From: Macrostomum hystrix
Lineage: Eukaryota > Animalia > Platyhelminthes
Direction: 5' to 3'
Length of the DNA: 64,000 nt
NCBI GenBank assembly: GCA_950097015.1
Contig: CATNEN010000009.1
Location: 1,116,001 to 1,180,000, forward strand
Of this stretch, positions 11,227 through 57,097 are shown one piece after another (the first letter of the stretch is position 1; each line of letters begins with the position of its first letter). The position numbers and the translations under genes were made by a program. Under the pieces are notes generated by a model. That model worked only from the letters and a program-made list of their open reading frames with translations, was not told the origin of the DNA and searched no databases.

Positions 11227-12207
11227 CTACAAAAATTTCGTTGGGTCATTATCGTCCTTGTGCGAGGAGGAGCGATGCCTTCGCTTCTTGGTGCCGACAA
11301 CGCAGAAGTCGCTCAGCCAGAGGCGCAGGGTCCTGTCCGCCGCCAGCACCAGGAAGCAGGCCAGCAGGCTCGGCGGCGCGGTGTCGAAAGGCGTGGCGCC
11401 CCGAGCTCCCTCCAGGGCGCTCATGTACTCCTCGCGGCAAAGCGTCAGGTTTCCGCTGGAGTTGCGCAACGTGGCAAAGTTGAACAGCAGCGGCACCGTC
11501 AGGCAGCCGCTGGCTCGAAGCAGCAGAGAGCACAGCAGGCGGCCTGTACGCCCGTTGCCGTCCCGGTACGGATGGATGAGCAGGAAGCGCTCCAGGAACA
11601 CGGCCGCCAGCTGAAAGGCTTCAGCGCGACACGCGATGTCCCGCAAATGCTTGGAGCAGTAGTCAAACAGAGCGTCCAACTCAGCGGGTATCAGATCCGG
11701 GTTAATGTACTTGAAGCCGGCTGCTGAGCCAGTCGGTGCCGCCTCCAGAGTGCGAAGAATACCGGCATCAGGAGCGCTGCCCGCGGGCATGAGCTGCCGG
11801 TGCAGCCGGTGGGCGAGATCCGCATTAAAATTCTGCTCGGGCCGATCGCGGAGACCAACGCCGAACAGCCATTGATAGGCTCGCTGAAGGCAGTTGACTT
11901 CGGCCGAATAGGCTTCATCACCGGCATCGCCCACCAGGACATGTTCAATGGTGACGTCCTGACCTCCGGAGAATAGGCGAACCTCGCACAGAGCGTAATA
12001 CCTGGCCAAGTACGCATCGTCGCTTAACTGCTGACCGGAGTCGCTGATTGAGCGCTGATAGGCAACTGATTTAGCACTAGGAATCTGGCTTTCCAGATTG
12101 CCCAGGTTGTCCAGCAGCTCGCGGACTGGCTCACCCGGAAGCAGCTGCTGTGGCTGATGATCAAGGCTAACAGCGGAATGGTCCAACTTTTTCAGCCTTA
12201 GAGCCAT
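11227..12207 (-). CDS. Fic/Doc-domain protein 1 (putative AMPylase), intronless, ~326 aa from MALRLKK
   Basis: Fic motif variant HPYRDGNGRTGR; LHRQLM and GILRT elements; flap region FKYINPDLIPAELDALF. ORF track 11227..12333; ATG at 12207 preferred. Confidence 0.9.
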   Translation of the reverse strand: MALRLKKLDHSAVSLDHQPQQLLPGEPVRELLDNLGNLESQIPSAKSVAYQRSISDSGQQLSDDAYLARYYALCEVRLFSGGQDVTIEHVLVGDAGDEAYSAEVNCLQRAYQWLFGVGLRDRPEQNFNADLAHRLHRQLMPAGSAPDAGILRTLEAAPTGSAAGFKYINPDLIPAELDALFDYCSKHLRDIACRAEAFQLAAVFLERFLLIHPYRDGNGRTGRLLCSLLLRASGCLTVPLLFNFATLRNSSGNLTLCREEYMSALEGARGATPFDTAPPSLLACFLVLAADRTLRLWLSDFCVVGTKKRRHRSSSHKDDNDPTKFL

Positions 12208-12364
12208 CGAACAGCTGGAAACAGACGAACAAGAGCTTTTGATTGTTTTAGCCAGGAGGTTAGAACTACCAACAATAAACCAAGCGGTCGAGAATTCGAA
12301 TTCGAGTCCAGGGGAGACAAAATGCATGAACAAGTACTGTATTGCTCATCGATTCAGATCAGGG

Positions 12365-13709: not shown

Positions 13710-14742
13710 TTACATTGTTCCGCATCTCACGGTGGACACCCTGTCCACGGTTTGATCAGCGTCTGCGGCTTCAGAGCAGCAGTAGAGCCACTCCGTCCAG
13801 TTCGTGACGGCCCTGTCAACAGCGGTGAGCAGGTAGGCAGCCAGGAGTCCGGGGTGTCCGCCGTGGCCCCTGGCCTCGCGCAGGCAGCGCAGGTAGATGT
13901 CGCGCGACCGCGGATCGGCCAGGCAGACGGACAGCGGCTCCGGCAGCAGCGGGCGCAGCAGCAGAGCGCAGAGCAGCCGGCCCGTGCGCCCGTTGCCATC
14001 GCTGAAAGGATGAATGGCGAGGTACTGTTCCAGGAAGCTGGCAGCCAGCTGAACTATCTCCAGGAGGCCGCCTCGGCTGGACTGTCTGGCGGCCCGGCAG
14101 TCTGCGAACAGCGCGGCCAGACGGCCTTCAATCTGCTCCGGCGGGGCGTAGTAAAAGTCCGGCTCGTCAGCAGGCCGCGCTGGCCGGGTGCGGTAGGCGC
14201 CGGCGTTGGTCAGCAGGCCGCGGCACACGATGGAGTGCAGCCGGCTGGCCAGGCTGGGCGTGAAGTCCGCCACGGAGACGGGGCCGGCGAGAGCTTCGCT
14301 GTCAGCAGGGCCGAACAGAAATTCCACAGCGCCCCACATGTTGCGCGTCACCTGATTAGCTACCGACGATGACTGATGAAGCTGAGGAGTTGCTGGAGCA
14401 TTCAAAGCCTGAAATTGTAAATTACATATTCGCTTTTAGTCAAGTAGGTCAGAAGGACTTCACCTGCTCCAGCTTTATCTCCAATGAGAAGAATCTTGTC
14501 ACCTGTTCGGACTCCTCGAAGGTCTGCGTTCCCTCCAGCTCGGACTGGTTCGCGTCCAACACAAAGTAGAACCGACACACTGACCGAAAATCTTTCCGCT
14601 CTGCGGCACTCAGACTAAAAAACTGCCGTCTTAGCTCCGATAGATTGGCTTCAATGCGAGGCACGCCAAGCAGCAAGTCCTCCTTGTAGGGAGCGATGAA
14701 GAATGGTCGGCTGACGAGAGGGCCTTGCATGCAAGGGACCAT
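13710..14742 (-). CDS. Fic/Doc-domain protein 2, two exons (14742-14464, 14408-13710), ~325 aa
   Basis: Canonical HPFSDGNGRTGR. A 55-nt GTGAAG...TTTCAG phase-0 intron joins ORF 14449..14766 to ORF 13710..14405 in frame. N-terminal QSELEG sits at the inhibitory-helix position. Confidence 0.9.
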
Positions 14743-20290: not shown

Positions 20291-20461
20291 AACTCGCAGA
20301 GCAGAAGCAAAAGTACATGCTACTTAGCCAAAAAGCTTCCCAAGGCGAGTTCCACCCGAGAATTTCATCGTCAGTTTCCCGCTGTCAGCGCTTCGGGCCC
20401 AGCTGAGTGCCGAATGATGGACCTGAGCCTGTGAACCGAAACTCAACGGCTGAATAACCAA

Positions 20462-22780
20462 ACACCTGTCACTTATCAGCTCCAGTCTCTCACCTGTCAC
20501 TCATCAGCTCCAGTCTCTCACCTATCACTCATCAGCTCCAGTCTCTCACCTGTCACTCATCAGCTCCAGTCTCTCACCTGTCACTCGTCAGCTCCAGTCT
20601 CTCACCTGTCACCCATCAGCTCCAGTCTCTCACCTGTCACTCATCAGCTCCAGTCTCTCACCTGTCACCCATCAGCTCCAGTCTCTCACCTTTCACTCAT
20701 CAGCTCCAGTCTCTCACCTGTCACCCATCAGCTCCAGTCTCACACCTGTCACCCATCAGCTCCAGTCTCTCACCTGTCACCCATCAGCTCCAGTCTCTCA
20801 CCTTTCACTCATCAGCTCCAGTCTCTCACCTGTCACCCATCAGCTCCAGTCTCACACCTGTCACCCATCAGCTCCAGTCTCTCACCTGCCTCTCATCAGC
20901 TGCAGTCTCTCACCTGCCTCTCATCAGCTGCAGTCTCTCACCTGTCACTTATCAGCTCCAGTCTCTCACCTGTCACTCATCAGCTGCAGTCTCTCACCTG
21001 TCACTCATCAGCTCCAGTCTCTCACCTGTCACTCATCAGCTGCAGTCTCTCAGCTGTCACTCATCAGCTCCAGTCTCTCACCTGCCTTTCATCAGCTGCA
21101 GTCTCTCACCTGTCACTCATCAGCTCCAGTCTCTCACCTGTCACTCATCAGCTCCAGTCTCTCACCTGTCACTCATCAGCTCCAGTCTCTCAGCTGTCAC
21201 TCATCAGCTGCAGTCTCTCAGCTGTCACTCATCAGCTCCAGTCTCTCACCTGTCACTCATCAGCTCCAGTCTCTCACCTGTCACCCATCAGCTCCAGTCT
21301 CTCACCTGTCACTCATCAGCTCCAGTCTCTCACCTGTCACTCATCAGCTCCAGTCTCTCACCTGTCACTCATCAGCTCCAGTCTCTCACCTGTCACTCAT
21401 CAGCTGCAGTCTCTCAGCTGTCACTCATCAGCTGCAGTCTCTCACCTGTCACCCATCAGCTCCAGTCTCTCACCTGTCACACATCAGCTCCAGTCTCTCA
21501 GCTGTCACCCATCAGCTCCAGTCTCTCACCTGTCACACATCAGCTCCAGTCTCTCACCTGTCACTCATCAGCTCCAGTCTCTCACCTGTCACTCATCAGC
21601 TCCAGTCTCTCACCTGTCACTCATCAGCTCCAGTCTCTCAGCTGTCACTCATCAGCTGCAGTCTCTCACCTGTCACCCATCAGCTCCAGTCTCTCACCTG
21701 TCACACATCAGCTCCAGTCTCTCACCTGTCACTCATCAGCTGCAGTCTCTCAGCTGTCACTCATCAGCTGCAGTCTCTCACCTGTCACCCATCAGCTCCA
21801 GTCTCTCACCTGTCACACATCAGCTCCAGTCTCTCACCTGTCACTCATCAGCTGCAGTCTCTCAGCTGTCACTCATCAGCTGCAGTCTCTCACCTGTCAC
21901 CCATCAGCTCCAGTCTCTCACCTGTCACACATCAGCTCCAGTCTCTCACCTGTCACTCATCAGCTCCAGTCTCTCACCTGTCACACATCAGCTCCAGTCT
22001 CTCACCTGTCACTCATCAGCTCCAGTCTCTCAGCTGTCACTCATCAGCTGCAGTCTCTCACCTGTCACCCATCAGCTCCAGTCTCTCACCTGTCACACAT
22101 CAGCTCCAGTCTCTCACCTGTCACTCATCAGCTGCAGTCTCTCAGCTGTCACTCATCAGCTGCAGTCTCTCACCTGTCACCCATCAGCTCCAGTCTCTCA
22201 CCTGTCACACATCAGCTCCAGTCTCTCACCTGTCACTCATCAGCTCCAGTCTCTCACCTGTCACACATCAGCTCCAGTCTCTCACCTGTCACTCATCAGC
22301 TCCAGTCTCTCAGCTGTCACTCATCAGCTGCAGTCTCTCACCTGTCACCCATCAGCTCCAGTCTCTCAGCTGTCACACATCAGCTCCAGTCTCTCACCTG
22401 TCACTCATCAGCTTCAGTCTCTCAGCTGTCACTCATCAGCTGCAGTCTCTCACCTGTCACCCATCAGCTCCAGTCTCTCACCTGTCACACATCAGCTCCA
22501 GTCTCTCACCTGTCACTCATCAGCTCCAGTCTCTCAGCTGTCACTCATCAGCTGCAGTCTCTCACCTGTCACTTATCAGCTCCAGTCTCTCACCTGTCAC
22601 TCATCAGCTCCAGTCTCTCACCTGTCACTCATCAGCTGCAGTCTCTCACCTGTCACTCATCAGCTCCAGTCTCTCAGCTGTCACTCATCAGCTGCAGTCT
22701 CTCACCTGTCACTCATCAGCTCCAGTCTCTCAACTGTCACTCATCAGCCACTCACCTGACCTGTCACTCATCAGCTCCTT
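20462..22780. repeat. 28-bp satellite, ~2.3 kb, abutting the cGLR stop codon
   Basis: CCTGTCACTCATCAGCTCCAGTCTCTCA, about 80 copies with higher-order variant patterns. Confidence 0.97.
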
Positions 22781-25700
22781 CGATTCCGTCCTTCTCTCGC
22801 AGGTAGTCCTTCACTCTCCGCATGACCAGGTGGACCCGATCTCGCTCATCAGGTGATGAGAATCGCTGCTGGCCGATCAGGTTCTCGACCTTCTGCCAGG
22901 TGGTTGTCACGCATCTCCGGCGCAGACTCGGCTGCAATGGAATTCAAATTACATTTCAAATTCAAATTGCGGCTGCACTAAGTCATGAGCAGACTCACAT
23001 TGTCATTCAGGAAGCTGATCACGGTGCCAGCCAGCCCGGTGTCCACAATCATCTCCCGGTTGCCGTGAATGGCCTCAACCAGCTTCGCCTCATCGCTGCA
23101 GTAATGCAGCATCATCAGCAGCTCCTGACTGTCCAGTCGGCCAGAACTGCTCCCATGGCCGAAGTCCCTGAGCAGCGCCTTCACTCCTTCCTCATCTCCG
23201 CTCAGCTTCCTGGACTCGAGTTGCAGCGACTTCATCAGCGCGTGAAAGTTGATGTAGACAGAGCTGCTGCTCCTGTGGGGCACCTTCCACGGGAAGGCCG
23301 CTCTCATGTGGTCAGGCAGGAAGTGGAGATCTGGCTTCCGGGCAAAGCTGAACATGAACTTCCACGCCGAGTCCGATGAATTCAGAGAATTCCAGACGAA
23401 ATCCACTCGGGCTTCAAGAAATCTACTTTCATATCCGAATTCAAAAAAGTCATCTTGCTCGACTTCAGGACAGCTGACCCCACAACTCGGGCTGAAGGAA
23501 AGACCATCACCGACACACGACTCAATGGGATTTTCCTCTCTGAGCCGCAGCAGAGCTCTCAGACTCTCTCTGGCAGTCCTGGCGCAGTCTGGAATCCGAC
23601 TGAGCAGCGAGTCGATCTGCTGCAGGTGACTCGCTTCATCACCCAGCATCTCCAGAGCTCTCCTCACCGCGTCATAGATCTGGTGATACTCAAACTGCTC
23701 ATTTGATTCTGGGATCCTGAGTTCATTGACGAGCGGCAGGATGAGGAACGGGTGGAACTCGATCACAGTCGGTGAGTTCTTCATCAGTGTCTGCTCAAAC
23801 TCTGCCATCAGCTGCGGCAGCTCATCCATCACGTGACGCACAACTTCAGCAATCTCGGCCCTTCCCTCGTGGTCCTTGCGCAGGTAAATGGCGGCGTGTC
23901 TCATGAAGAAGTGGCGCATGCACTGCTGCTCACTGCTGCTTGAGTCAGTGAGGGAATCGAGCAGCAGCTCCAGTGACTGTCTCAGCAGCTTCATCAGATT
24001 CTGCGGCTGCCACTCATCAGCTGGTGTCCTGTCCAGCATGTAGAAGAGCAAGTTCTTCGCGTGGTAGGTCTTCAGGCCCTTGACTCGCTTTGCGATCACT
24101 CGCTTGATGAGGTACTTGAGCAAGATGAAGAGCTGACCCTGGAGTGTTGTGAGACTGTGCATCAGCCCCCTCTCCATCAGAGTGGTGCTGACTCGCATGC
24201 AGCGGCCCTCCTGGCCTGGAGGAGCTGCGGAGACCACGTGGCACTGGGTGCCGTATATGTTCTTAAGGATATCCTGAGGAATGTAGCAGTATCCAAAGAC
24301 TTTGAAATCCGGATATCCACAGCACGGGAAGGCCTTGACTTGGTCAACTGAAGGCGTCAGAGTCATTCCTTTGGATGCAATGTTCGGCTTGATGGCTGCA
24401 AATTGTGTGAGTGAAAATTAATCTGTTGAATGGTAATAAATTAATAATTCTTAATGTCTTTGCAAATTTCTATTCTCTCACCTAACCCTAACCCGTTTCT
24501 GTTATTCGAAATTCGAGCTATTCGAAATTGATGGTGGACAGGCAGGTCCCATGGGAGTAGTTAGTGACACCAACCAGTGCCCAGAGACCACATTGGACAC
24601 ACTTGCAGAGGCCGCATCCTATGGTATGCAGTGACTGTGGACTGACGAGTTCTCTGCATCCACTGCCATCTCTCCCTCTCCACATCTCACTGCTTTGCTT
24701 CTCAGGAATTATGTTCTTCAGGAAATGGCAACTGCTGTGAAATTCCAAGGCTAGAAAACTAATGCTTTTCACGAATGTAGTTTTATGAATGAATCTATTT
24801 AAAATGTTATCATTTGCAATATTTTTACATATTATCTAGCTTCCCTGAAATTTAAAATTTTTCGCTCGCTCACAACAAAGGATGATAAAATAAACTGAAT
24901 GGGTGTCCAGCAGAGTAGCGATCTCAAGCTGCTCTCATGCCTTGTACAGTCCCTAAATGTACTCACAAACTAGCCACAATTCACTCACAGTCGGTCCGAT
25001 GTGCAACATGGCCGTCGCTGAGCTCAACTTCAACGCATGTCACTTTTTCCAAACTTCTGTGTTTCCAAGTGCCAGCCAGATGCAGCGTCACTCGAGTGTC
25101 CATCACAGTGACATCCATGTCGGAGTCCGCATCAGTCTGTCCGCAGATTCCACTGAGGCAGTTGCCCCAGCCGTCAGCGAAGCTGCCGATCAAATGGCAC
25201 TCACCGACGCTCCTCCGTCTGAGAATTTGCTCCAGGACAGCCGCGGTGCCGCTCTGAACGGCCGCGTTGATTCGAGTGAACCCCGACCTGCTGAGCGACT
25301 CGTGGAGCCGGCAGGAAAGTTCGCTGCGAAAATGGAGTATGAGCACACGTGAGCACAGCTGCTTGCAAGGAAATTATTTGACATAGTTTATATAATAATA
25401 ATAAAATGGGGTTCGCAGAAATTTGTAAATGAGTAGTATGCGAGAGGGGCTATCTGGGACAAACGTCTACGCAGTCGCCATATTCCATCCGCTACTCTCG
25501 CATCGTGAATGTCAAAGTCTGGCAGATTGTGCAGTCTCTCTAGTCGGCTGAGTCTTCTTTTCGTTTTCCCCCAGTCGTTGTATATCCTATTCAAATACTC
25601 GGTGTGTCTTGTTACGGTTTTGTTTTATTCTTTCAATCTTTGTTCGCACTTCTGCTCGCAATTCTGAAATATCTGACTCTGCTGCTGTGAGTCTCGAGCT

Positions 25701-28700
25701 CAATCTATCATGCCGAACTCTAGTTGTATTTTCTGCTACTCTTCCTTCCACCAAGTTTGCTCGATTATCAGTGGCGGTTCTCAGAGTGGCGATGTCTGAT
25801 CTCAGAATGGCGATGTCTGATCTCAGAGTGGCGATGTCTGATCTCAGAGTGGCGATGTCTGATCTCAGAGTGGCGATGTCTGATCTCAGAGTGGTGATGT
25901 CTGATCTCAGAGTGGCGATGTCTGATCTCAGAGTGGCGATGTCTGATCTCAGAGTGGTGATGTCTGATCTCAGAGTGGCGATGTCTGATCTCAGAGTGGC
26001 GATGTCTAATCTCAGAGTGGCGATGTCTAATCTCAGAGTGGTGATGTCTGATCTCAGAGTGGCGATGTCTGATCTCAGAGTGGTGATGTCTGATCTCAGA
26101 GTGGCGATGTCTGATCTCAGAGTGGCGATGTCTAATCTCAGAGTGGCGATGTCTAATCTCAGAGTGGTGATGTCTGATCTCAGAGTGGCGATGTCTGATC
26201 TCAGAGTGGTGATGTCTGATCTCAGAGTGGCGATGTCTGATCTCAGAGTGGCGATGTCTGATCTCAGAGTGGTTATCGCTGCAACAAGAGTATCAAGTGT
26301 ATCCCGATCACGAACAAACTGTAAATATAGTCTGTCACTCTCTTCCTTCTGCTTTGCTACGTTCAACCGCAGGTCTTCCATGTTTATTTGTTGTTGGTGT
26401 GTTCAGCGCTCTAAGGGCTTTCAAGCGATCTCTGATGGGTTTGATTTCTGGATTTTTTTCGTCAACATTTATATAGTTGTATAGATTTATAGCTATATAA
26501 ATGTTGCGCCTGTCAAGATATGAAACTTGAGCACTAGTGAGTGTGCTTCCGCGATCCAACGATTCACCTGCAAAATTAATTTACATTTTTACTAGCAAAT
26601 TTTAAATTGCAGTTCTTTTTTCCTGATTGATCGTCACAGGTAAGGTTGATTCCACTTTTCAAAAGCAAAGATTAACGAATTCCTCCTGTGAAATCTTTCT
26701 GTTGGAGTTTTTTGTTGGATTTATAAAATAGGCAGGCGCAATGACCTCATTGTAAAATCTGTTTAGCCTGCCCTGTGGAATGGTTGGAAACAGGAGGATC
26801 AGATTGCAGTTCCCGCGAATTGTTTTGTTCGGGAGCTCGAACCAGTTCTGGGCAATGTAAATTACATTACAATTGTTGTGCCGTCCTCTTGTAAAATAGT
26901 TTTCTATCTGCTTCTGTGGGCCTGTCATGCAATTATCAAAGACAATCAAATGCTTTCTCCCCTTTTCTAGCTCATCTGGTTGGGGTAGAAGTTTGGTCTT
27001 TGGATCAATCTGTGGGTCTCCATAGGTGAGCACTTTAATGTGCTGCCATTATCATTGTCTTGCATGCGTTTTGCACATTCGGCAGCTACAATTTCTGGGT
27101 TATTGTGAAGGCTTTTTGGTTATTAAAACATGCATTAATGTCCTCTTTGTCCAGTTTGTTTTGAAGTCCTGCAAGCAGCATTTTATACTCATCTTGATAC
27201 TCATCTTGATACTCATCTTGATACTCATCTTGACACTCATCTTGACACTCATCTTGACACTCATCTTGACACTCATCTTGACACTCATCTTGACACTCAT
27301 CTTGACACTCATCTTGACACTCATCTTGACACTCATCTTGACACTCATCTTGACACTCATCTTGACACTCATCTTGACACTCATCTTGATACTCATCTTG
27401 ACACTCATCTTGACACTCATCTTGACACTCATCTTGATACTCATCTTGACACTCATCTTGATACTCATCTTGACACTCATCTTGACACTCATCTTGATAC
27501 TCATCTTGATACTCATCTTGATACTCATCTTGACACTCATCTTGACACTCATCTTGACACTCATCTTGATACTCATCTTGATACTCATCTTGATACTCAT
27601 CTTGATACTCATCTTGACACTCATCTTGACACTCATCTTGATACTCATCTTGATACTCATCTTGATACTCATCTTGACACTCATCTTGACACTCATCTTG
27701 ACACTCATCTTGATACTCATCTTGACACTCATCTTGATACTCATCTTGATACTCATCTTGACACTCATCTTGACACTCATCTTGATACTCATCTTGACAC
27801 TCATCTTGACACTCATCTTGACACTCATCTTGACACTCATCTTGACACTGTGGGAGAGTAGATGTGCGGAGTGTCATAGTCTAGGAATCCAGGTCTCAGA
27901 AGCATATCAAATACTCTGAATGTCTTTCCACTGCCAGATGTTCCAACAACAATGCATCTGAAGTGACTCGGGAATGACTCATTATGAGAAAACTTTAGCT
28001 GATTACGCGTCCAGTGAGGATTGATGTCCATTTTTCACCCAGGAAAAAATTATAAACAATAATTTCGAATCTCGTCGAGAGGTGTGTCATTTTGGGACTG
28101 ATATGTCTTTTGGGGACTTATATATGTCATTTTGGGACTTGCCTTTGTCATTTTGGGACTAGTCTTGTACCCTCGGAAAGTACCCTCTTGTCAAATTTGA
28201 AACCACTTTCCTTTTTTATGCTATCTCTTATCTTCTCATAGATTGCAGATCCACACTGTCTGGATTTGGAGCAAGTGGTTGAATCCCTGGGAGTGTTTTC
28301 CATTCAGTTACAGTATCCTTTATCTTTTTAGCCGCAGTAACAACACTGCCAACTGATTCTGCTACGTTCTTAATATTGTCTTTGCTATCACTAATAACTT
28401 TAAAGATCCGAGCACCCTGTGCAATTATATCAGCAAGACCTGAGCTTTCTTTCCACGGATAGCGGCCTGCTGGGAAAAGTCCAGATCCACGCTTTGTTCG
28501 ATTAAGTTCCTATTTGTCATAATTTTTGTCAACTTCATACGAGGTGCGGTCAAGTTCAAGTGAGACAAACGCAATATCTATGGTAAATCCCACCCGATCA
28601 TCTTCGCAAGTGTTTCATATTTTAGCTAGACTAATACACAATCAGTGACAAAAAATCAGCTTTTTTCATCGACTTCTGCCTTAGCTACAACTTGATAAAG

Positions 28701-31700
28701 TGCATCAGCCACAAGAACCCAAAAAATGGCGGCCTAACAATGGTGACCCCTACTCCCTACTCCCCAGACCTGGCGCCAGCTGACTATTTCCTCTTCCCAA
28801 CGATCAAGGGGGAGCTGGGGGCGTATCAGCGGAGACACCGTCAAGGTGGAGTGGGAGCGAGCCTGCAGCCGCCTTTCGCCAGGTGCCTTCGCCTCAGCCT
28901 TTGACAGGCGGATCGAGCGGCTCAAGAAGTGTGTCGAGATGAAGGGCAACTACGTCGAGAAGGGCTCGAAGATAGCAGAGGACGAATATGGGGCCTTTTC
29001 TGACGTTGACATTTAGAAAATTGAAGAAGCGCAAGAACATCCATTATTTCTGGGCAATAGTACCACATTTTTTGGGTCTCTCGACCTGTACTTTTGTTCA
29101 ATGAGAAAGCGTACAGCTGTTGCTAGTTTTTTTAACTGAAGTTTTGCTAATTGTATGTTAAAATTAATGCTCTTTTAGAATAAATCATCTGCTTTCCCTC
29201 TAAAGTGTTTAATAACGAGGCTGCCGACACTGTCTCACTTGAACTTGACCGCACCTCGTACTTTCATTCTGCCCAGCAGCTGAATATGTTTTATTGTAAC
29301 AATCAAAACCACAAGAACAGACAGCATGCGCTTGATCGTGAGAAGGACCACAGCATCCGCGTCTCCTTTTATCTAAATTGTAGTTAAAGCAATTCCAACT
29401 GATCTGCAGACCTACAGGACGATTTCCACTCAGCCAACCAGCACAATCTCATGAGGATGCTGCCAGCTGCCCTGCACCCTGTTGCGCCTTCCTCAAGTGA
29501 AGCCCGTTTAAGTTTGAGTTTCCTGGCACGCTGTCGAATTTATCCGCTTCCAAATGAGTGCCAGCTACGAATGCCACATAGAGCCTGGTGAACACATCGA
29601 GTATAGTGGTCTACAAAAACAATCACATCACTTTTAAGACCGCTTAAAAAAGTAAATACTGTTGAAGACCTACAGAAGTCCGGCTAATTCACACGTAGAG
29701 ACTGAATGGCTCAGACGGAATCCGAAAGACTTTCAAAGATCGAAGCTAGATGCTGACGAGAACAGAATTAAGTCAGAATCATTTAGCTGTGTGTCAGCAA
29801 CAAGAATAAACTGCATTCCAATATGCAGCATGTCAAGATTATCGGACCTGTTGCCAAATGAACACAATAGTATAGAAAGTAAATTAGCAAACATTTGCTA
29901 AATACTGTTTACTTGAGTTCTGTTGCCTGGTATATCCAAGATATTTGAGAGGCATATGACATGAGAAAATTTTTTTTATTAAAAAAACACATGGAAAAGT
30001 TACGTATGCACACACTTACACTGGAATGCATTCTGTCCGAGACCGAGACTTTTTACTGTACTCCGTGGAAATTCGTATGATCAGCATGGCTGACCATAGA
30101 CTATTTCATCCTTGGCGTGTGGTATTGCATCACTCCATGAAAATCTGAAGCGAATTCTATGCAGTTCTTGCGCATCGGTTTTTTATTCCTTAGACGAATG
30201 GGTGGGTAGCTGTAACGCAAAGCGTCTATGTCCTAAACCTTCCAGCCCTATATATGTACAGTAAGCTGTTGTCCTTCACTGCAGTCTTTCTCTGCCCCCT
30301 CCAAGCTCACTGTGCCTGTGTGAAAAACTGTCTACTTGAGTGGCATGGACCAACTTATTACCAGCGACGAATCGTTTAGCGACTCCAGCAGTTCAGCATC
30401 GAGCCAAGAGTTAGCCATCGAGAGTAACAGTGAGGAGGACAACGATGAAGCTGATGAGAATGGACCTGCTTGGAGTATCGTAAACGATGAAGCTGACGAG
30501 CGATCTGGAATAACTGCCTGAGTTTCTCGGGACATCTGGCGTTACGAATGGCGTGGCATGCAGATCCCAGTGCGCTGAGCTATTTTGAAAAGTTCATTAC
30601 GGAGGACATGATTAATCAGCTAAAGGAGAACACCAATGGTCGGGCTTGGGAGGAACTGCGAAGCTTCGAAGAGCGCAGCGAACTGATAACCAGCCATTGC
30701 CGCCTGGTCTGGCGGATTGGAAATACTGCTCAGCAGCTGAAATAAAAAGACACTTTCCATTATTTTCTATATGGGAATTGTGCGAAAGCCTGAAATCCAG
30801 AGCTACTGGGCTACCAGCAGATTCCACGACAGCCAGTTGTTCCAAAGCGAAAGCTGCCTGTCACGGAACCGATTTCAGATTCTTTCATATCTGAGGTTTT
30901 ATGATTGCCACGATGCCGAAGCTACAGACCCACTGCACAAAATCCGGCCATTTCTTAATAGCTTTTGGCAAGCATGTCAGAGCAACTTTATGCCGGACAG
31001 GGATATTGCAGTTGATGAGGAACTAGTTCATCTAGGTATGGTATAAAGACCTACTGCCTGTGTGATTCGAAAACCGGCTACCTGTGGAATGTCCTAGTCC
31101 ACTCGACATCTGAAGAAAGCAACAAATTCGGCTCAGAGTTCAGTGGCCACAATCTGTCCATTAGCGAGCGCATCGTCGCTGAGCTTTCCAAAGACCTGTT
31201 CGATCTTGGTCATCGAATATTCGTTGACAGCTTTTTTGTTCTTATCGCTTAGCAATGTTCCTCCTTGAGCACAACGCTCTGCTGACTGGAACCATTCGCT
31301 GCAACAGAGGCATCCACCGGAGCTCCTCCAACTGCCAACACCGGCTCCATCACATTGCTACATGCGTAGCGGCGATGTCCTGGCTGTTAAAGTATCGGAC
31401 CGGAAGGCAAGCGGGGTTAAAACTCTGTACCTCATCGATACGTTCGGAACGTATCAGTGACAGTGATTGATTACTCAAAGTCAATGGGCGGTGTCGACAG
31501 AATGGACTCTGCACTTCAGCCATACCATCCGACCAGGAAGATGTACCGCTGGCACCAGAAGCTCGGCATTCATTTCCTGCTGCAGCGGGCGCACAATTCG
31601 TGGATCGTTTATCACCTGTCAGGCGGCACACGCAAGTTTTTGCAGTTTGTGGAGCAGCTGGTTGTTGTCCTCATCGACAGCACTGGGCCAGGCAAGAAGC

Positions 31701-34700
31701 GGTGCTTTCGCCCTGCGCATGCAGCTGCTGGACCTGCTGGCTCGCATCTTCCCTTCAAGCTGGCTGCGATGCCTGAAAACCAGCGTCCTGCTCGTCGCTG
31801 TAGAGTTTGCTATCAAAACGGCAGAAGCAAGCGCACTGTCTTCAGCTGCCAGGAGTGCCCCGGTCAGCCTGGCCTCTGTGTCCCCGAATGCTTTCTTCAA
31901 TGGCACAGCTGAGCTTCGATCTGGGTGACTCGACCATGGAGATGAACTGCTGATTGAATTCCCTCAGTTTAAAAAAAACATCTAGGGATCTGTTTTAATA
32001 ATGGGAGGGTAAACAATAAAGTGTTAAAGGCAACAATATTTCACAGTTTGAAGTATATAAATGCCAACTATACTTGCTCGTGCATCTTTAATCTTTATGT
32101 ATTGTGTTAAATCCCATTTTACTAAATCTCTGATCTTGTATATTCATACAAGAGTTTATACTAAAAAATGATTTATGACAGCTTCGATAGAAAATTTTGA
32201 AGCGGGCCATTTATGTCACTTCCATCGAACTGTAAGTTTAATTACTGTACTGTTCCTGTTAAATTATATTTTTATTTCCTTGCAACTTTTCAGCCCATGT
32301 TTTGTGATGAATTCGTAGCTTGTTTCTTAAGCAGACTCGCGTCAACCTAGCAAATATTCTTGTCTACTCGCAGATCGGATAATTCTTTCTGAATGATTTC
32401 AAGGTCTCTAGTCTGTTCCACATCGTTCCATTCACAGTTTTCTTTTTTTGCAAGTAAATGAACCCAATCCGTATTTTACTGCCACTCTTCGTACGACTTT
32501 TTCGCTGGAGGATTTACGCCCATAGTCACTGTTCCGCATTACTTTGATTTTGTTACATCTACCGATGCAAGATATGATAGGTATCGCAAACAGAACAAAC
32601 CAGGAATGACGTTTTAGCTTTTGAAAACTATGGTCAGCCTGGCTGAGCATGCGGATTTTCACTGGGTGCTGCTTGTGCACGGGGCAGATGAGCCGCAAGT
32701 GCCATAGACTGTCGGAGCCCAGAAAATGTATATGGTCAGCCTGGCTGACCATCGGATTTGAATGGGTTAAGGAAAGATGTTTGCCCTAGAAGTATTTTAA
32801 AATATTACGATGCATAACCAAGTCCAGGTACAAAATGGTAAGTTGCGGGTGGCAATCGTAAACCAAAAAGCAAGCATCAGGCGCTACTCACGTGATGTCG
32901 ACACGAGCATCAATCGACATTGGATCGACGGCATGACCGCTCAGAACTGCTGCAAAGTCAGCATTTCCGAAGCAACAGAGAAGCCAAATGTGTCTTGGCA
33001 GCTGGTCGGATGCGGAACAGGGCAACACCGATGGCTGATTGCTAAACAGCGAATACGAGACGGACGATCCTCGCAAAACAGCCAAATCGGTGGCCGTCAG
33101 AGCGTCCAAATCAGGTAAAATTAGAGCAGATGACTCAAAAAGCTGAACTGCGATGTGCGGAAGCTCCAGCCAGATGGCCAGATGCAGAGGGGTCCAGCCA
33201 GAACTGCTTTTACGATTGACGTCAGCACCAGCAACAATGAGCAACCGGATAAGCTCAGAGTGATCCCATTCAACGGCAAAATGAATAGCCAGGCAGCCAT
33301 GGGTGTTCGGTAGATTGATGCTTGCTCCACATTCGATCAGCTTTCTGGCAATTTCCAAATGCCCTTGAGCAGTTGCTGTGTGAAGTGCTGAACAGCCATC
33401 TTTATTCTGTAGATCGATGCTTGCTCCACAGTCGATCAGCTTTCTGGCAATTTCCAAATGCCCTTGAGCAGTTGCTGTGTGAAGTGCTGAACAGCCATCT
33501 TTATTCTGTAGATCGATGCTTGCTCCACAGTCGATCAGCTTTCCGACCACTCCCAAGTGTCCCTGGAAAGCTGCGCTGTACAGTGGTGACCAGCCATCTT
33601 TATTCTGCAGATCGATGCTTGCTCCACAGTCGATCAGCTTTCCGACCACTTCCAAGTGTCCATTGACTGCTGCGCTGTTCAGTGGTGACCAGCCATCATT
33701 ATCCTGTAGATCGATGCTTGCTCCACAGTCGATCAGCTTTCCGACCACTTCCAAGTGTCCATTGACTGCTGCGCTGTTCAGTGGTGACGAGCCATCATTA
33801 TTCTGTTGATCGATGCTTGCTCCACAGTCGATCAGCTTTCCGACCACTTCCAAGTGTCCTTTTGTCGCTGCGCTGTTCAGTGGTGACGAGCCATCATTAT
33901 TCTGTAGATCGATGCTTGCTCCACAGTCGATCAGCTTTCCGACCACTTCCAAGTGGCCCTCATCAGCTGCGCTGTTCAGTGGTGACCAGCCATATTTATC
34001 CTGTAGATCGATGCTTGCTCCACAGTCGATCAGCTTTCCGACCACTTCCAAGTGTCCCTCATCAGCTGCGCTGTTCAGTGGTGACGAGCCAACATTATTC
34101 TGTAGATCGATGCTTGCTCCACAGTCGATCAGCTTTCCGACCACTTCCAAGTGTCCTTTTGTCGCTGCGCTGTTCAGTGGTGACGAGCCATCATTATTCT
34201 GTTGATCGATGCTTGCTCCACAGTCGATCAGCTTTCCGACCACTTCCAAGTGTCCCTTGACAGCTGCGATGTTCAATGGGGACCAGCCATTATTGTTCTG
34301 TCGATTGATGCTTGCTCCACAGTCGATCAGCTTTCCGACCACTCCCAAGTGTCCCTGGAAAGCTGCGCTGTTCAGTGGTGACCAGCCATCTTTATCCTGT
34401 AGATCGATGCTTGCTCCACAGTCGATCAGCTTTCCGACCACTTCCAAGTGTCCCTGGAAAGCTGCGCTCTTCAGTGGTGACCAGCCATCATTATTCTGTA
34501 GATCGATGCCTGCTCCACAGTCGATCAGCTTTCCGACCACTTCCAAGTGTCCCTGGAAAGCTGCGCTCTTCAGTGGTGACCAGCCATCTTTATTCTGTTG
34601 ATCGATGCTTGCTCCACAGTCGATCAGCTTTCCGACCACTTCCAAGTGGCCCTCATCAGCTGCGCTGTTCAGTGGTGACCAGCCATATTTATTCTGTAGA

Positions 34701-35614
34701 TCGATGCTTGCTCCACAGTCGATCAGCTTTCCGACCTCTCCCAAGTGTCCTTTTTTTGCTGCGCTGTTCAGTGGTGACGAGCCAAATATATTCTGTAGAT
34801 CGATGCTTGCTCCACAGTCGATCAGCTTTCCGACCACTTCCAAGTGTCCCTGGAAAGCTGCGCTCTTCAGTGGTGACCAGCCATCTTTATTCTGTTGATC
34901 GATGCTTGCTCCACAGTCGATCAGCTTTCCGACCACTTCCAAGTGTCCTTTTGTCGCTGCGCTGTTCAGTGGTGACGAGCCATCATTATTCTGTTGATCG
35001 ATGCTTGCTCCACAGTCGATCAGCTTTCCGACCACTTCCAAGTGTCCCTTGACTGCTGCGCTGTTCAGTGGTGACGAGCCATCTTTATCCTGTAGATCGA
35101 TGCTTGCTCCACAGTCGATCAGCTTTCCGACCACTTCCAAGTGTCCATGGACAGCTGCGCTGTTCAGTGGTGACCAGCCATCTTTATCCTGTAGATCGAT
35201 GCTTGCTCCACAGTCGATCAGCTTTCCGACCACTCCCAAGTGTCCTTTTTTTGCTGCGCTGTTCAGTGGTGACGAGCCAAATATATTCTGTCGATCGATG
35301 CTTGCTCCACAGTCGATCAGCTTTCCGACCACTCCCAAGTGTCCTTTTTTTGCTGCGATGTTCAGTGGGGACCAGCCATATTTATTCTGTCGATTGATGC
35401 TTGCCCCACAGTCGATCAGCTTTCCGACTACTCTCAAGTGGCCATGCTCAGCTGCGATGTTCAATAGTGTCCAGCCATCTTTGTTCTGCCGATCGATGCT
35501 TTGATAGAAATAGCAGGAAATAGTTAAGATGATGATAAAGATGAAGATTGAGAGGACGATAATTACAATTAAAAAGTAATTATTCAAATTCTCGTGTTGA
35601 GCGGCATTTGTCAT
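22764..35614 (-). CDS. Ankyrin-repeat cGAS-like receptor (Mab-21/cGLR nucleotidyltransferase), 4 exons, ~1540 aa
   Basis: Exons 35614-32892 (hydrophobic N-terminus plus 24 ANK), 25323-24989 (GSFADG...DSDMD), 24395-22999 (VDQVKAFPC, RVSTTLMERGL, LKTYHAKNLLFY, MRHFFM) and 22931-22764. All three donors are GTGAGT, acceptors end in GCAG, phases 2/1/0 match, total 4623 nt open. The cGLR call is strong; the ANK-to-NTase splice is inferred. Confidence 0.75.
25587..26381 (-). CDS. Coiled-coil protein with 21-bp heptad repeat (LRSDIAT)n, within the Polinton-like segment
   Basis: 264-aa ORF with about 23 heptads and unique N- and C-terminal flanks. Confidence 0.5.
   Translation of the reverse strand: MEDLRLNVAKQKEESDRLYLQFVRDRDTLDTLVAAITTLRSDIATLRSDIATLRSDITTLRSDIATLRSDITTLRLDIATLRLDIATLRSDIATLRSDITTLRSDIATLRSDITTLRLDIATLRLDIATLRSDIATLRSDITTLRSDIATLRSDIATLRSDITTLRSDIATLRSDIATLRSDIATLRSDIAILRSDIATLRTATDNRANLVEGRVAENTTRVRHDRLSSRLTAAESDISELRAEVRTKIERIKQNRNKTHRVFE
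26600..28031 (-). pseudogene. A32/FtsK-HerA-type DNA packaging ATPase, frameshifted and repeat-expanded
   Basis: Walker A CIVVGTSGSGKT (ORF 27837..28031); Walker B LIVFDN, RGRHNN, IYIAQ and TIRGNCN (ORF 26659..27033). Halves are in different frames, separated by a 12-bp array. Confidence 0.8.
27185..27850. repeat. 12-bp tandem repeat (CAAGATGAGTGT / CAAGATGAGTAT on minus strand) inside the ATPase
   Basis: About 55 copies encoding QDEC/QDEY, continuous with QDEYKMLLAGL. Confidence 0.95.
28228..28509 (-). pseudogene. Small amphipathic-helix ORF with KRGSG motif, 5' end disrupted
   Basis: Hand translation (not on ORF track): ELNRTKRGSGLFPAGRYPWKESSGLADIIAQGARIFKVISDSKDNIKNVAESVGSVVTAAKKIKDTVTEWKTLPG...; upstream in-frame TAG and mariner insertion. 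Confidence 0.45.
28540..29258 (+). mobile_element. Internally deleted mariner transposon (719 bp)
   Basis: Perfect 28-bp TIR CGAGGTGCGGTCAAGTTCAAGTGAGACA; TA TSD; YSPDLAPADYFLF motif; C-terminal RLKKCVEMKGNYVEK. Confidence 0.95.
30060..32770 (+). mobile_element. piggyBac DNA transposon with frameshifted transposase (about 30336-31912)
   Basis: DDD residues AVDEE, FVDSFF, GGVDRMD; C-terminal Cys-rich domain CRVC...CQEC...C..EC. Right end ...AATGGG|TTAA (32767-70). Subterminal TATGGTCAGCCTGGCTGA repeats have an inverted match at about 30065-30100; left TIR not found. Confidence 0.85.
33125..35500 (-). repeat. 24 x 99-bp ankyrin coding repeats
   Basis: 33-aa period; repeats 1-20 share GHL(E/G/R)(V/E)VGKLIDCGA, 21-22 are near-identical to each other, 23-24 are divergent caps. 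Confidence 0.97.
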
Positions 35615-36196
35615 TTAGCCGTTTTGGTTCTCTTCTGTTTAGTTAGGCAGAAAAGTGAAATTCGTTGCCATCTTAGAAGAATTTTTGGCGTAATAGAAAA
35701 CTTTATTCAAAGATAACCTCGGCTTCTGTGCATACTGGCGTCTTTTAGTTTGGTGGTTGCTGTCAATGGCAACCTTGACGGAGAGAGCGGTAGGTTTCGT
35801 GGGACAATAGAACTGAGTACAGTGAAGGCAGAATTAAGAAATTCATCTCTCCTCTAACTGGCTGTGTAACGAATGCAAAGCCACAACCATTTTGAGACTC
35901 GAGCTTTGCTGCAGCGCTATCAAATTGGACTCAACTGAGCAGTCCTATCTTGGCCTGCACCTGGGTTTGTGCCGAAAGCGTTGTCCTAGGCACTACACTA
36001 GTTTTATCTCACCACTGTCTGAATATAGATAAATGCCAGCATGATGAATGTAAGATTTGTTTTCAATCCAGAGTTTATCCCAAAAACATACTTTTTTACA
36101 GCAAATTTATCGAGCCTTTGATTGAGTTTAGCAACATTTGCTAAAACTTTGATTTTATTTCATATATGACTAGTATCTGGGTGGCAGAACGCAGGA

Positions 36197-55466: not shown

Positions 55467-57097
55467 ATGTCCTGCCCGCCAACCTCGGCCGTGCGCATTC
55501 GCACCTACCATCCCACCGAGGCTGAGTTCGCCAATTTTTCTGCCTACGTCTCAGACACCATCGAGGCCAGCGGAGGCCACCTGGCCGGCATCTGCAAGGT
55601 GGTGCCGCCCAGCTCGTGGCGACCCCGCCAGGCCGGCTATGACGACTTGAGTAGGCTGAGCATTCCGCAGCCAATCAAACAGCGCATTGTGGGCACGGAC
55701 GCCGGCGCCTACCAGCTCTGGAATGAGACGCTGAAGTCACTGACGCTCGAGCAGTACAAACTGCTGGCCGAGAGCGAGCTTCACAGGTGACAGTCAGACT
55801 CGCTGACACATCAGACAGACTCGCTGACACATCAGACAGACTCGCTGACACATCAGACAGACTCGCTGACACATCAGACAGACTCGCTGACACATCAGAC
55901 AGACTCGCTGGCACATCAGACAGACTCGCTGACACATCAGACAGACTCGCTGACAGATAAAACCCACCTCAACCCTCCAGGCCCCCCGCCCGCTGCAGCA
56001 GCCCTGAGCAGCTGGAGCGCAAGTACTGGGCCAGCCTAACGCTGAACCCGCCAGTGTACGGTGCCGATGTCAGCGGATCCGTCACCGACGTGGACCAGCC
56101 GCTGTGGAACATGCGCCGGCTCGGCACCCTGCTTGACAGCCTGGACCAGCGCATCGCCGGCGTGAACACGCCCTACCTGTACTTCGGCATGTGGAAGAGC
56201 ACCTTTCCGTGGCACACGGAGGACATGGACCTGTACTCGATTAACTACCTGCACTTCGGCGCCTCCAAGCACTGGTACGCCGTGCCGCCGGCCAACGGTC
56301 GCCAGTTCGAGCGCCTGGCCGATGCCTACTTCGGCGCCTCCAAGGCCGAGTGTCCGGCCTTCCTGCGCCACAAGACCTCCGTGCTCAGCCCGCAGCTGCT
56401 GCGTCGGCACGGCGTGCCGTTCGACTCGATTGTGCAGCACGGCGGCGAGTTCATCATCACCTTCCCCTTCGGCTACCACTGCGGCTTCAACGCCGGCTTC
56501 AACTGCGCCGAGAGCACCAACTTTGCCAGCCGGCGCTGGATCCACTTCGGCCTGGCTGCTCGCATCTGCCGATGTCAGGATGACAGCGTCATCATCGACA
56601 TGGCGCCCATTGTGCACCGCTTCGGCGACGTCAACTGTGCCGATCAGTCGCCCAGCGGCCGTCGACGCCCGCCGCCTCAGGGCCGACACCCCGCCGAGCT
56701 GGAGGCCGCCGCCGGCGACACCCGGCAGCAGCGGTCGCGGCCGCCGATTCCTTCGCCTTCGAAGTCAAACAGCCCAGCATCTGGAACATCGTCGGAGAAT
56801 CCTAAGCGCCGTCGAAAGTTGCCGAAAGTCTCCGCAGCGGCCGAGCCGGACGAGAAGTCAACGGACGCCGATGTCACCGATGTGGTCGACTCTCTGAGAA
56901 GCTCGCATTCGCCGATGATGCGAAGGTGTGGCAGCGACTCGGAGACGGGCATCGAGGTCGCATCCGAGCCTATCGAGAAGCCGGACACCCTGGACGCACC
57001 CGAAATCGTCCCCGATTTTGCTAGCGAGGCTTCGATCGAATCGCCAAGGAGCTCCGGCCAGATGATGAACCTGTTCGACCGACTGCGGTCCGCCTGA
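55467..57097 (+). CDS. KDM4: KDM4/JMJD2-family histone demethylase (JmjN plus JmjC only), 2 exons, ~478 aa
   Basis: Exons 55467-55786 and 55981-57097 (phase 2). JmjN YHPTEAEF...GICKVVPP; Jmj[47 protein letters not shown]. Confidence 0.93.
55795..55955. repeat. 21-bp minisatellite filling the KDM4 intron (GACTCGCTGACACATCAGACA)
   Basis: About 7 copies starting a few bases after the donor. Confidence 0.95.

Follow-up and report, generated by a model that had tools for sequence, protein, structure and literature searches.

Li et al. (2023; 10.1101/2023.02.22.529553) have described about 3,000 cGAS-like receptors (cGLRs), some of which are fused to tetratricopeptide repeats (TPR) or ankyrin (ANK) repeats (their Figs 1C, S2A and 4C), and they read the ANK repeats of such fusions as possible protein or ligand interaction modules. 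The flatworm Macrostomum lignano contributes to this set: their Table S2 gives an Ank_2 domain on PAA86972.1, PAA45980.1, PAA68676.1 and PAA68216.1, and their Table S3 gives five M. lignano nucleotidyltransferase (NTase) domains with the same motifs that were cloned for a screen (numbers 89–93). Here we analyse a gene on the minus strand of a 64-kb stretch of the genome of Macrostomum hystrix (64,000 nucleotides of contig CATNEN010000009.1, hereafter the window). Four coding exons and an exon of the 3′ untranslated region (3′UTR) very probably lie on one mRNA, encoding an ankyrin-fused NTase of the cGLR family of 1540 amino acids (aa). The gene belongs to the published ANK–cGLR clade, which is expanded in Macrostomum, and is not a new kind; the novelty implied by a preliminary description of the locus, made from the sequence alone, was overstated, since fusions of this type, M. 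lignano members included, are already found in Fig. 1C and Tables S2 and S3 of Li et al. (2023).

The M. lignano ANK–cGLRs (PAA93879.1, 1575 aa; PAA86972.1; PAA45980.1) resemble the window protein in the order of their parts, an ANK array followed by a Mab-21/cGAS-type NTase and a helical C-terminal extension, and also in the catalytic columns and in the placement of three introns, one of which falls at the domain boundary. The NTases are 35–42% identical. On the other hand, the window gene has a hydrophobic anchor that 30 paralogues lack, 22 repeats at 90% nucleotide identity and a boundary intron of 7.6 kb, compared with 94 nt. Its closest relatives are two M. lignano entries, here called P0001 and P0002, whose identity to the window protein is 69% and 67% across 630 aa; the two start no more than two residues from the boundary of the second coding exon (exon B) and have no start Met, and are therefore taken as truncated gene models. 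An exhaustive profile search returned 631 representatives below 1e-3 and 82 clusters below 1e-30. All nine of the high-scoring matches that were looked up are from M. lignano, and long N-terminal ANK arrays are carried by six of the seven scanned with Pfam, for example PAA93879.1; among the weaker matches (about 1e-10 to 1e-17) are proteins of molluscs that bear the name cyclic GMP-AMP synthase-like receptor or Mab-21-like. In another phylum, cGLRs of Stylophora pistillata fused to ANK or death domains (Li et al., 2023, Fig. 4C) combine an NTase core with ANK repeats, a likeness that we draw from their description. A text search of the literature found no paper that pairs Macrostomum with a cGLR, and none beyond Li et al. 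(2023) on a membrane-anchored ANK–cGLR.

Gene structure and transcript evidence

In the translated window the gene appears as unconnected pieces: a 908-aa ankyrin open reading frame (ORF) at 35614–32888, closed by a TGA at 32888–32890, and three NTase pieces that are visible in a frame-by-frame translation of 22700–25400. The preliminary description had spliced the ankyrin ORF at 32892 to an NTase exon starting at 25323, and the letters read exactly as it had given them (slashes mark splice sites): on the minus strand, the donor is ...GAC ATC AC/GTGAGT and the acceptor is TTTTCGCAG/C GAA CTT. The two further phase-matched introns that it proposed hold as well. The joined exons (35614–32892, 25323–24989, 24395–22999 and 22931–22764) give a coding sequence of 4623 nt for 1540 aa, in which all phases agree and the only stop is the terminal one. 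No second, paralogous copy of the gene was found elsewhere in the 64-kb window.

Exon A (32892–35614) begins with Met1, ends after the second base of codon 908 and encodes the predicted anchor, the ANK array and a linker. Intron 1 (25324–32891; 7568 nt, GT..AG, phase 2) lies at the boundary between the ANK and NTase domains. Exon B (24989–25323) carries the N-terminal helices of the NTase, its strand 1, the G954-S955 pair and D976/D978, and is separated by intron 2 (24396–24988; 593 nt, GT..AG) from exon C (22999–24395), which holds D1037, the Mab-21_C domain with its KTYHAK and HFFM motifs and most of the C-terminal helical extension. After intron 3 (22932–22998; 67 nt, GT..AG), exon D (22756–22931) supplies the final 55 codons, the stop TGA at 22766–22764 and then 3 or 8 nt of 3′UTR, depending on the donor (22761/22760 or 22756/22755). 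The protein thus consists of a short N-terminus, a predicted anchor helix at residues 13–37, 22 + 2 ANK repeats at 44–835, a linker of about 70 aa, an NTase core with Mab-21_C at about 906–1235 and a helical extension of 300 aa. The N-terminal anchor, the C-terminal extension and an intron in the 3′UTR had not been mentioned in the preliminary description.

The RNA evidence consists of Logan contigs, which are assemblies, from four runs that all belong to one study; they were placed on the genome outside 27201–30999. The four runs hold 74–77% of the sampled words of the NTase exons, and the contigs are spliced and therefore derived from RNA. The junction between 32892 and 25323, across which the preliminary description had proposed an RNA check, is spanned in each of the four runs by one 856-nt contig: its bases 1–65 match 24331–24395, bases 66–400 match 24989–25323 and bases 401–856 match 32892–33347. 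Two alleles (C/T at 25322) share the identical junction, and loose contig ends at 32892 and 25323 each read the partner exon. The joints 24395/24989 (593 nt skipped; all four runs) and 22931/22999 (67 nt skipped; three runs) are both GT..AG on the minus strand. No contig in the four runs reads through the donor at 32892 to the TGA at 32888–32890, and depth is zero at 32576–32772; transcripts ending at this TGA, which the preliminary description had named as the outcome that would speak against its gene model, were not seen. ANK and NTase are thus joined on one polypeptide, with the frame kept, as in the described ANK-fused cGLRs.

It should be noted that the RNA contigs differ from the genome at 21 coding sites over 22764–25323 and 32892–33347, 15 of them nonsynonymous; alleles or a close paralogue are possible sources. 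One run has a patch of 15 changes at 25039–25071 that recodes residues 994–1003, in a low-confidence loop.

At the 5′ end of the transcript, the match between contigs and genome is colinear from 35328 up to 35664–35701 and covers a 5′UTR at 35615–35701. An in-frame stop abuts the ATG at 35614 on its 5′ side and the ANK array contains no other Met, so that Met1 is the sole start able to include the array. The longer contigs also contain an upstream ORF of ten codons (MATNFTFLPN; 35639–35671, with its ATG at 35671–35669). At the 3′ end, contigs break off from the genome at 22755 or 22760 and resume with 26 nt found at 20402–20427. The canonical reading places donors at 22756/GT and 22761/GT, 5 nt apart and both used in RNA, and an acceptor at AG/20428; since both donors lie 3–8 nt past the stop codon, 20429–22755 is an intron of the 3′UTR, and it is followed by a downstream 3′UTR exon (20402–20428) of which only the start, the 26 nt, is present in the contigs. 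This intron is nearly filled by a 28-bp minisatellite (20463–22778; 83 copies, 93% matches) that begins inside the last coding exon and whose unit reproduces the final codons, the stop TGA and a CAG/GTGAG donor.

Nucleotidyltransferase fold and active site

Pfam was scanned on the exon pieces, and the fold was modelled on the 69%-identical homologue P0001 rather than on the window protein. Two of the three domain matches anticipated by the preliminary description were obtained: Mab-21_C (PF20266) on exon C (22984–24417, minus strand; 35.3 bits for a cutoff of 24.1) and Ank, in 22 stretches of the 908-aa ORF. The third, the N-terminal Mab-21 model, gave no match and is taken up below. A profile of the full family, searched against PDB sequences, gave weak matches only, restricted to the Mab-21_C part, the top ones being all cGAS or cGLR1. 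AlphaFold, given the family alignment, yields a model of P0001 with a predicted local distance difference test score (pLDDT) of 83 and a predicted template-modelling score (pTM) of 0.84. Foldseek ranks cGAS and Cv-cGLR1 first for this model, with a probability of 1.0, and VIA-align superposes its residues 5–320 on residues 161–521 of human cGAS with a Z score of 19.1 over about 265 residues. The Mab-21 fold on which the preliminary description depended is thus present in the model. The corresponding Z scores are 18.4 for MB21D2, 18.4 for Cv-cGLR1 and 17.8 for MAB21L1; enzymes and inactive Mab-21 proteins are thus told apart by the active-site columns and not by the fold alone.

These columns are well conserved. 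The whole catalytic set listed in the preliminary description was located in the spliced protein: G954-S955 (25187–25182) and D976-M-D978 (25121–25113) in exon B, the third catalytic aspartate D1037 in VDQVKAF (24345–24343) in exon C, KTYHAK at residue 1128 and HFFM at residue 1181. In an alignment of 66 relatives and the window protein, the glycine is kept in 66/67, the serine in 65/67, the two aspartates of the acidic pair in 64/67 and 63/67, and the third aspartate in 59/67. In the P0001 model the catalytic residues are found immediately behind strand 1, where strand 2 begins and on a later strand, which is the expected NTase topology. The C-terminal 630 aa are, as judged from sequence and predicted fold, a cGAS/Mab-21-type nucleotidyltransferase with a conserved catalytic set. 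Residue 1186 (23898–23896, in HFFMRHA) is a His where 57/67 family members carry an Asp after HFF; P0001 keeps the Asp.

Compared with animal cGLRs and cGAS (human cGAS, Cv-cGLR1 of PDB entry 8gjw and Drosophila cGLR1), the family shares the bilobal NTase fold (Z of 18–19 over 260–270 residues), the Mab-21_C domain and the pattern of GS and acidic triad, but the identity is only 12–17%. The window protein also differs from them in the spacing of the GS motif and the acidic pair, which is about 10 residues longer and is a feature of its family, and in its neutral core isoelectric point (pI), its ANK array, its anchor and its C-terminal modules. By analogy with the characterised cGLRs, the enzyme would be catalytically competent and make a nucleotide second messenger from nucleoside triphosphates, which we consider rather likely.

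Predicted membrane anchor, ankyrin array and possible ligand sensing

Residues 13–37 (35504–35578, minus strand) form a predicted signal-anchor helix. They are an unbroken, uncharged run of I, L, V, F, S, T, Y and C with a 19-residue Kyte–Doolittle mean of 3.54, compared with a highest value of 2.58, and mostly below 2, in 30 M. lignano paralogues. A sequence search with residues 1–50 found no relatives. Such a helix may fix the protein in a membrane and leave its ANK array and NTase in the cytosol, a proposal to which we give an even chance; a cytosolic placement is probable because R and K follow the helix. At the other end, the C-terminal extension (residues ~1236–1540; 22999–23751 plus exon D) is predicted with confidence as a helical domain (pLDDT 81) and is conserved in the family. 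It has no match in the PDB (best E 0.2), its look-alikes in the Atlas are unconvincing (scores of at most 0.59), and among the clusters of the AlphaFold database its only matches are with members of the family and, weakly, with the C-terminal ends of Mab-21 proteins from molluscs.

The ANK array consists of 22 near-identical repeats of 33 aa (residues 44–769; 33308–35485, minus strand), with a 99-nt period and a mean nucleotide identity of 90%, followed by two degenerate repeats (residues 770–835; 33110–33307, minus strand) and then by the linker that ends at 32892. The preliminary description had seen a 24-repeat solenoid; the total stands, but the solenoid is not uniform. In a comparison of the 908-aa ORF with the protein collection only generic ANK proteins were found, with no entry for the protein itself and no Mab-21 fusion. 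Amino-acid variation among the repeats is concentrated at positions 1, 2, 3, 5, 9, 10, 13, 14, 18 and 32. Positions 2, 3, 5, 13 and 14 are those randomised in libraries of designed ankyrin repeat proteins (DARPins), with which the predicted array shares a near-invariant framework; it differs from them as a natural 22-repeat array in which positions 1, 9, 10, 18 and 32 vary too. By comparison with ANK and DARPin structures, the variable positions would lie on the binding face. The ratio of nonsynonymous to synonymous differences per site (pN/pS) in repeats 1–20 is 1.15 for the variable codons and 0.14 for the framework.

These features suggest a way in which the enzyme could be regulated: activation would be controlled via the ANK array, whose fixed variable positions would bind a protein or another non-nucleic-acid ligand. 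We put this forward tentatively, as the evidence for ligand sensing by the ANK array is only suggestive. The pI of the NTase core is 7.3, that of the array 5.2 and that of the whole protein 5.55. Nucleic-acid-sensing cGLRs have a higher predicted pI (Li et al., 2023), and the near-neutral core is a weak argument against direct sensing of nucleic acids.

Three other explanations have to be weighed. The locus could hold two separate genes, an ANK protein ending at the TGA at 32888–32890 and an NTase that has a separate first exon; the join would then be an artefact of short-read assembly. Logan contigs are indeed assemblies, all four runs come from a single study, and 27201–30999 lies outside the RNA placement. 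However, the join sits exactly at GT and AG, in frame, in four runs and with both alleles at 25322, no contig continues past the donor, and in M. lignano the annotation gives the paralogues as undivided ANK + NTase proteins, with an intron at this very boundary. A pair of genes is thus already contradicted by the data, and we regard it as extremely improbable. If the fusion is accepted, the protein could still be a non-enzymatic adaptor with a Mab-21 fold that makes no second messenger, either a membrane-anchored scaffold like MiD49/MiD51 (MIEF) or a nucleotide binder like MAB21L1. In MiD49/51, a membrane anchor at the N-terminus precedes a Mab-21-type fold in the cytosol, as proposed here; moreover, MAB21L1 and MB21D2 score close to cGAS (Z of 17.8 and 18.4 for 19), and M. 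lignano members are without reported activity. Yet the MiD proteins have neither catalytic activity nor ANK arrays, and the window protein keeps its catalytic residues. The inactive adaptors are recognized by loss of the catalytic acidic residues; in this family those columns are conserved, GS, DxD and the third Asp being retained in 59–66 of 67 members, and the resemblance in the anchor is functional only. Mab21L1/2/3 are without a predicted functional active site (Li et al., 2023), and the family differs from them there. An adaptor is therefore improbable.

The part played by the array is harder to assign. The protein may be a true ANK–cGLR whose array is a module for localisation or scaffolding, the ligand being sensed by the NTase core or the C-terminal extension, as in the canonical cGLRs that bind dsDNA or dsRNA. 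ANK arrays often act as scaffolds, the pN/pS of about 1 at the variable codons fits simple relaxed constraint, and groups of repeats that differ by 0–1 nt (3/8, 6/14/17 and 7/10/11) are signs of recent duplication or conversion and not of tuned diversity. Against a mere scaffold, half of the ten variable positions coincide with those of the DARPin libraries. All characterised cGLRs sense their ligand via the NTase domain (Li et al., 2023), which also favours a scaffold; the core and whole-protein pI speak on the other side, given the higher pI of the nucleic-acid-sensing cGLRs in the same study. We hold this explanation to be somewhat unlikely. A bolder version of ligand control by the array would make the protein a membrane-anchored cGLR in which the near-identical ANK array, through its ten main variable positions, is a germline-diversified, direct sensor of pathogen proteins and the enzyme sends a nucleotide second messenger to a receptor that is not canonical STING, in a phylum from which cGAS–STING is otherwise reported lost; this seems to us quite unlikely.

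Some results weigh against an active, anchored cGLR that is controlled through its array. The model PF03281, for the N-terminal part of Mab-21, matches neither exon B nor P0001 nor any of six paralogues; this miss is one of divergence and does not exclude the fold. Neither a single-sequence search nor a profile of the NTase core gave a useful match among PDB sequences, the core profile finding no chain, so that the equivalence to E225, D227 and D319 of cGAS is one of predicted topology, and the structural evidence is that of a predicted homologue. By hydropathy, the anchor is particular to this gene and absent from the 30 paralogues. The pN/pS of about 1 is no proof of diversifying selection as opposed to relaxed constraint, because the variable set was picked post hoc and pS is also raised. 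In the screen of Li et al. (2023), clones 89–93 are outside the 15 enzymes studied in depth (cGLR-01 to cGLR-15), and M. lignano is absent from the main text. Finally, neither cGAS nor STING was found in a planarian in a 2026 study (PMC13563047).

The boundary intron and its meaning for the family

Intron 1 is filled with elements, as the preliminary description had stated: it contains transposon remnants and tandem arrays. A decayed piggyBac-type transposase lies on the plus strand at 30771–31912, in at least two frames; its DDE_Tnp_1_7 domain (54.8 bits) and zinc finger (zf-Tnp_2, 36.1 bits) are both there but in different frames rather than in one open frame, which marks a decayed remnant, and it is flanked by imperfect 40-nt inverted repeats at 30060–30099 and 32628–32667. 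An insert of 723 bp (28538–29260) resembles a miniature inverted-repeat transposable element, with perfect 30-nt terminal inverted repeats and a TA at each end, compatible with a TA target duplication. A 12-bp tandem array of 55 copies occupies 27187–27849 and a 21-bp array of 23.5 copies occupies 25779–26272. The ORFs at 25587–26381, 25609–26484, 27026–27919 and 27086–27877 were rejected as genes; they are translated 21-bp and 12-bp arrays, and their coiled-coil Pfam matches are low-complexity artefacts. A 64-aa ORF at 27837–28031 (minus strand) that extends into the 12-bp array scores below threshold for the packaging ATPase Pox_A32 (17.4 bits for a cutoff of 22.8; profile positions 3–34), and this is the sole match that speaks for a possible Polinton-like relic in the intron. 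Short RNA contigs also occur in the intron at 26243–26392, at the edge of the 21-bp array, and at 25519–25616, near the acceptor, at a depth of 6–30; they could be repeat-derived transcripts from elsewhere or fragments of the intron.

The M. lignano protein PAA93879.1 has introns at residues 949/950, 1066/1067 and 1527/1528 that correspond to the three coding introns of the window gene, the second and third exactly and the boundary intron within about 5 residues. Since PAA93879.1 shares the position of the boundary intron but has only 94 nt there, compared with 7568 nt here, the position is ancestral and the size in M. hystrix is secondary. The ancestral domain-boundary intron was swollen by transposon insertions and tandem arrays.

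Elsewhere in the window, two Fic/DOC ORFs lie about 8–11 kb downstream of the cGLR gene on the same strand (11227–12333 and 13710–14405, minus; 56.8 and 59.2 bits), and an ORF with a JmjC hydroxylase domain lies at 56054–57097 (plus; 143 bits).

Where a long intron full of elements falls at a domain boundary, gene prediction can break up a sensor–enzyme fusion, as this locus shows. In M. lignano, the closest models have their first residue no more than two positions from the boundary and are without a start Met, and counts of cGLR domain architectures may therefore be too low. Macrostomum carries a large expansion of ANK–cGLRs, whereas other flatworms are reported to be without cGLRs and STING. 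Within this expansion, a member with a predicted anchor and a DARPin-like variable array would be a practical subject for finding out which ligands other than nucleic acids cGLRs respond to and how their signal is received in this lineage.

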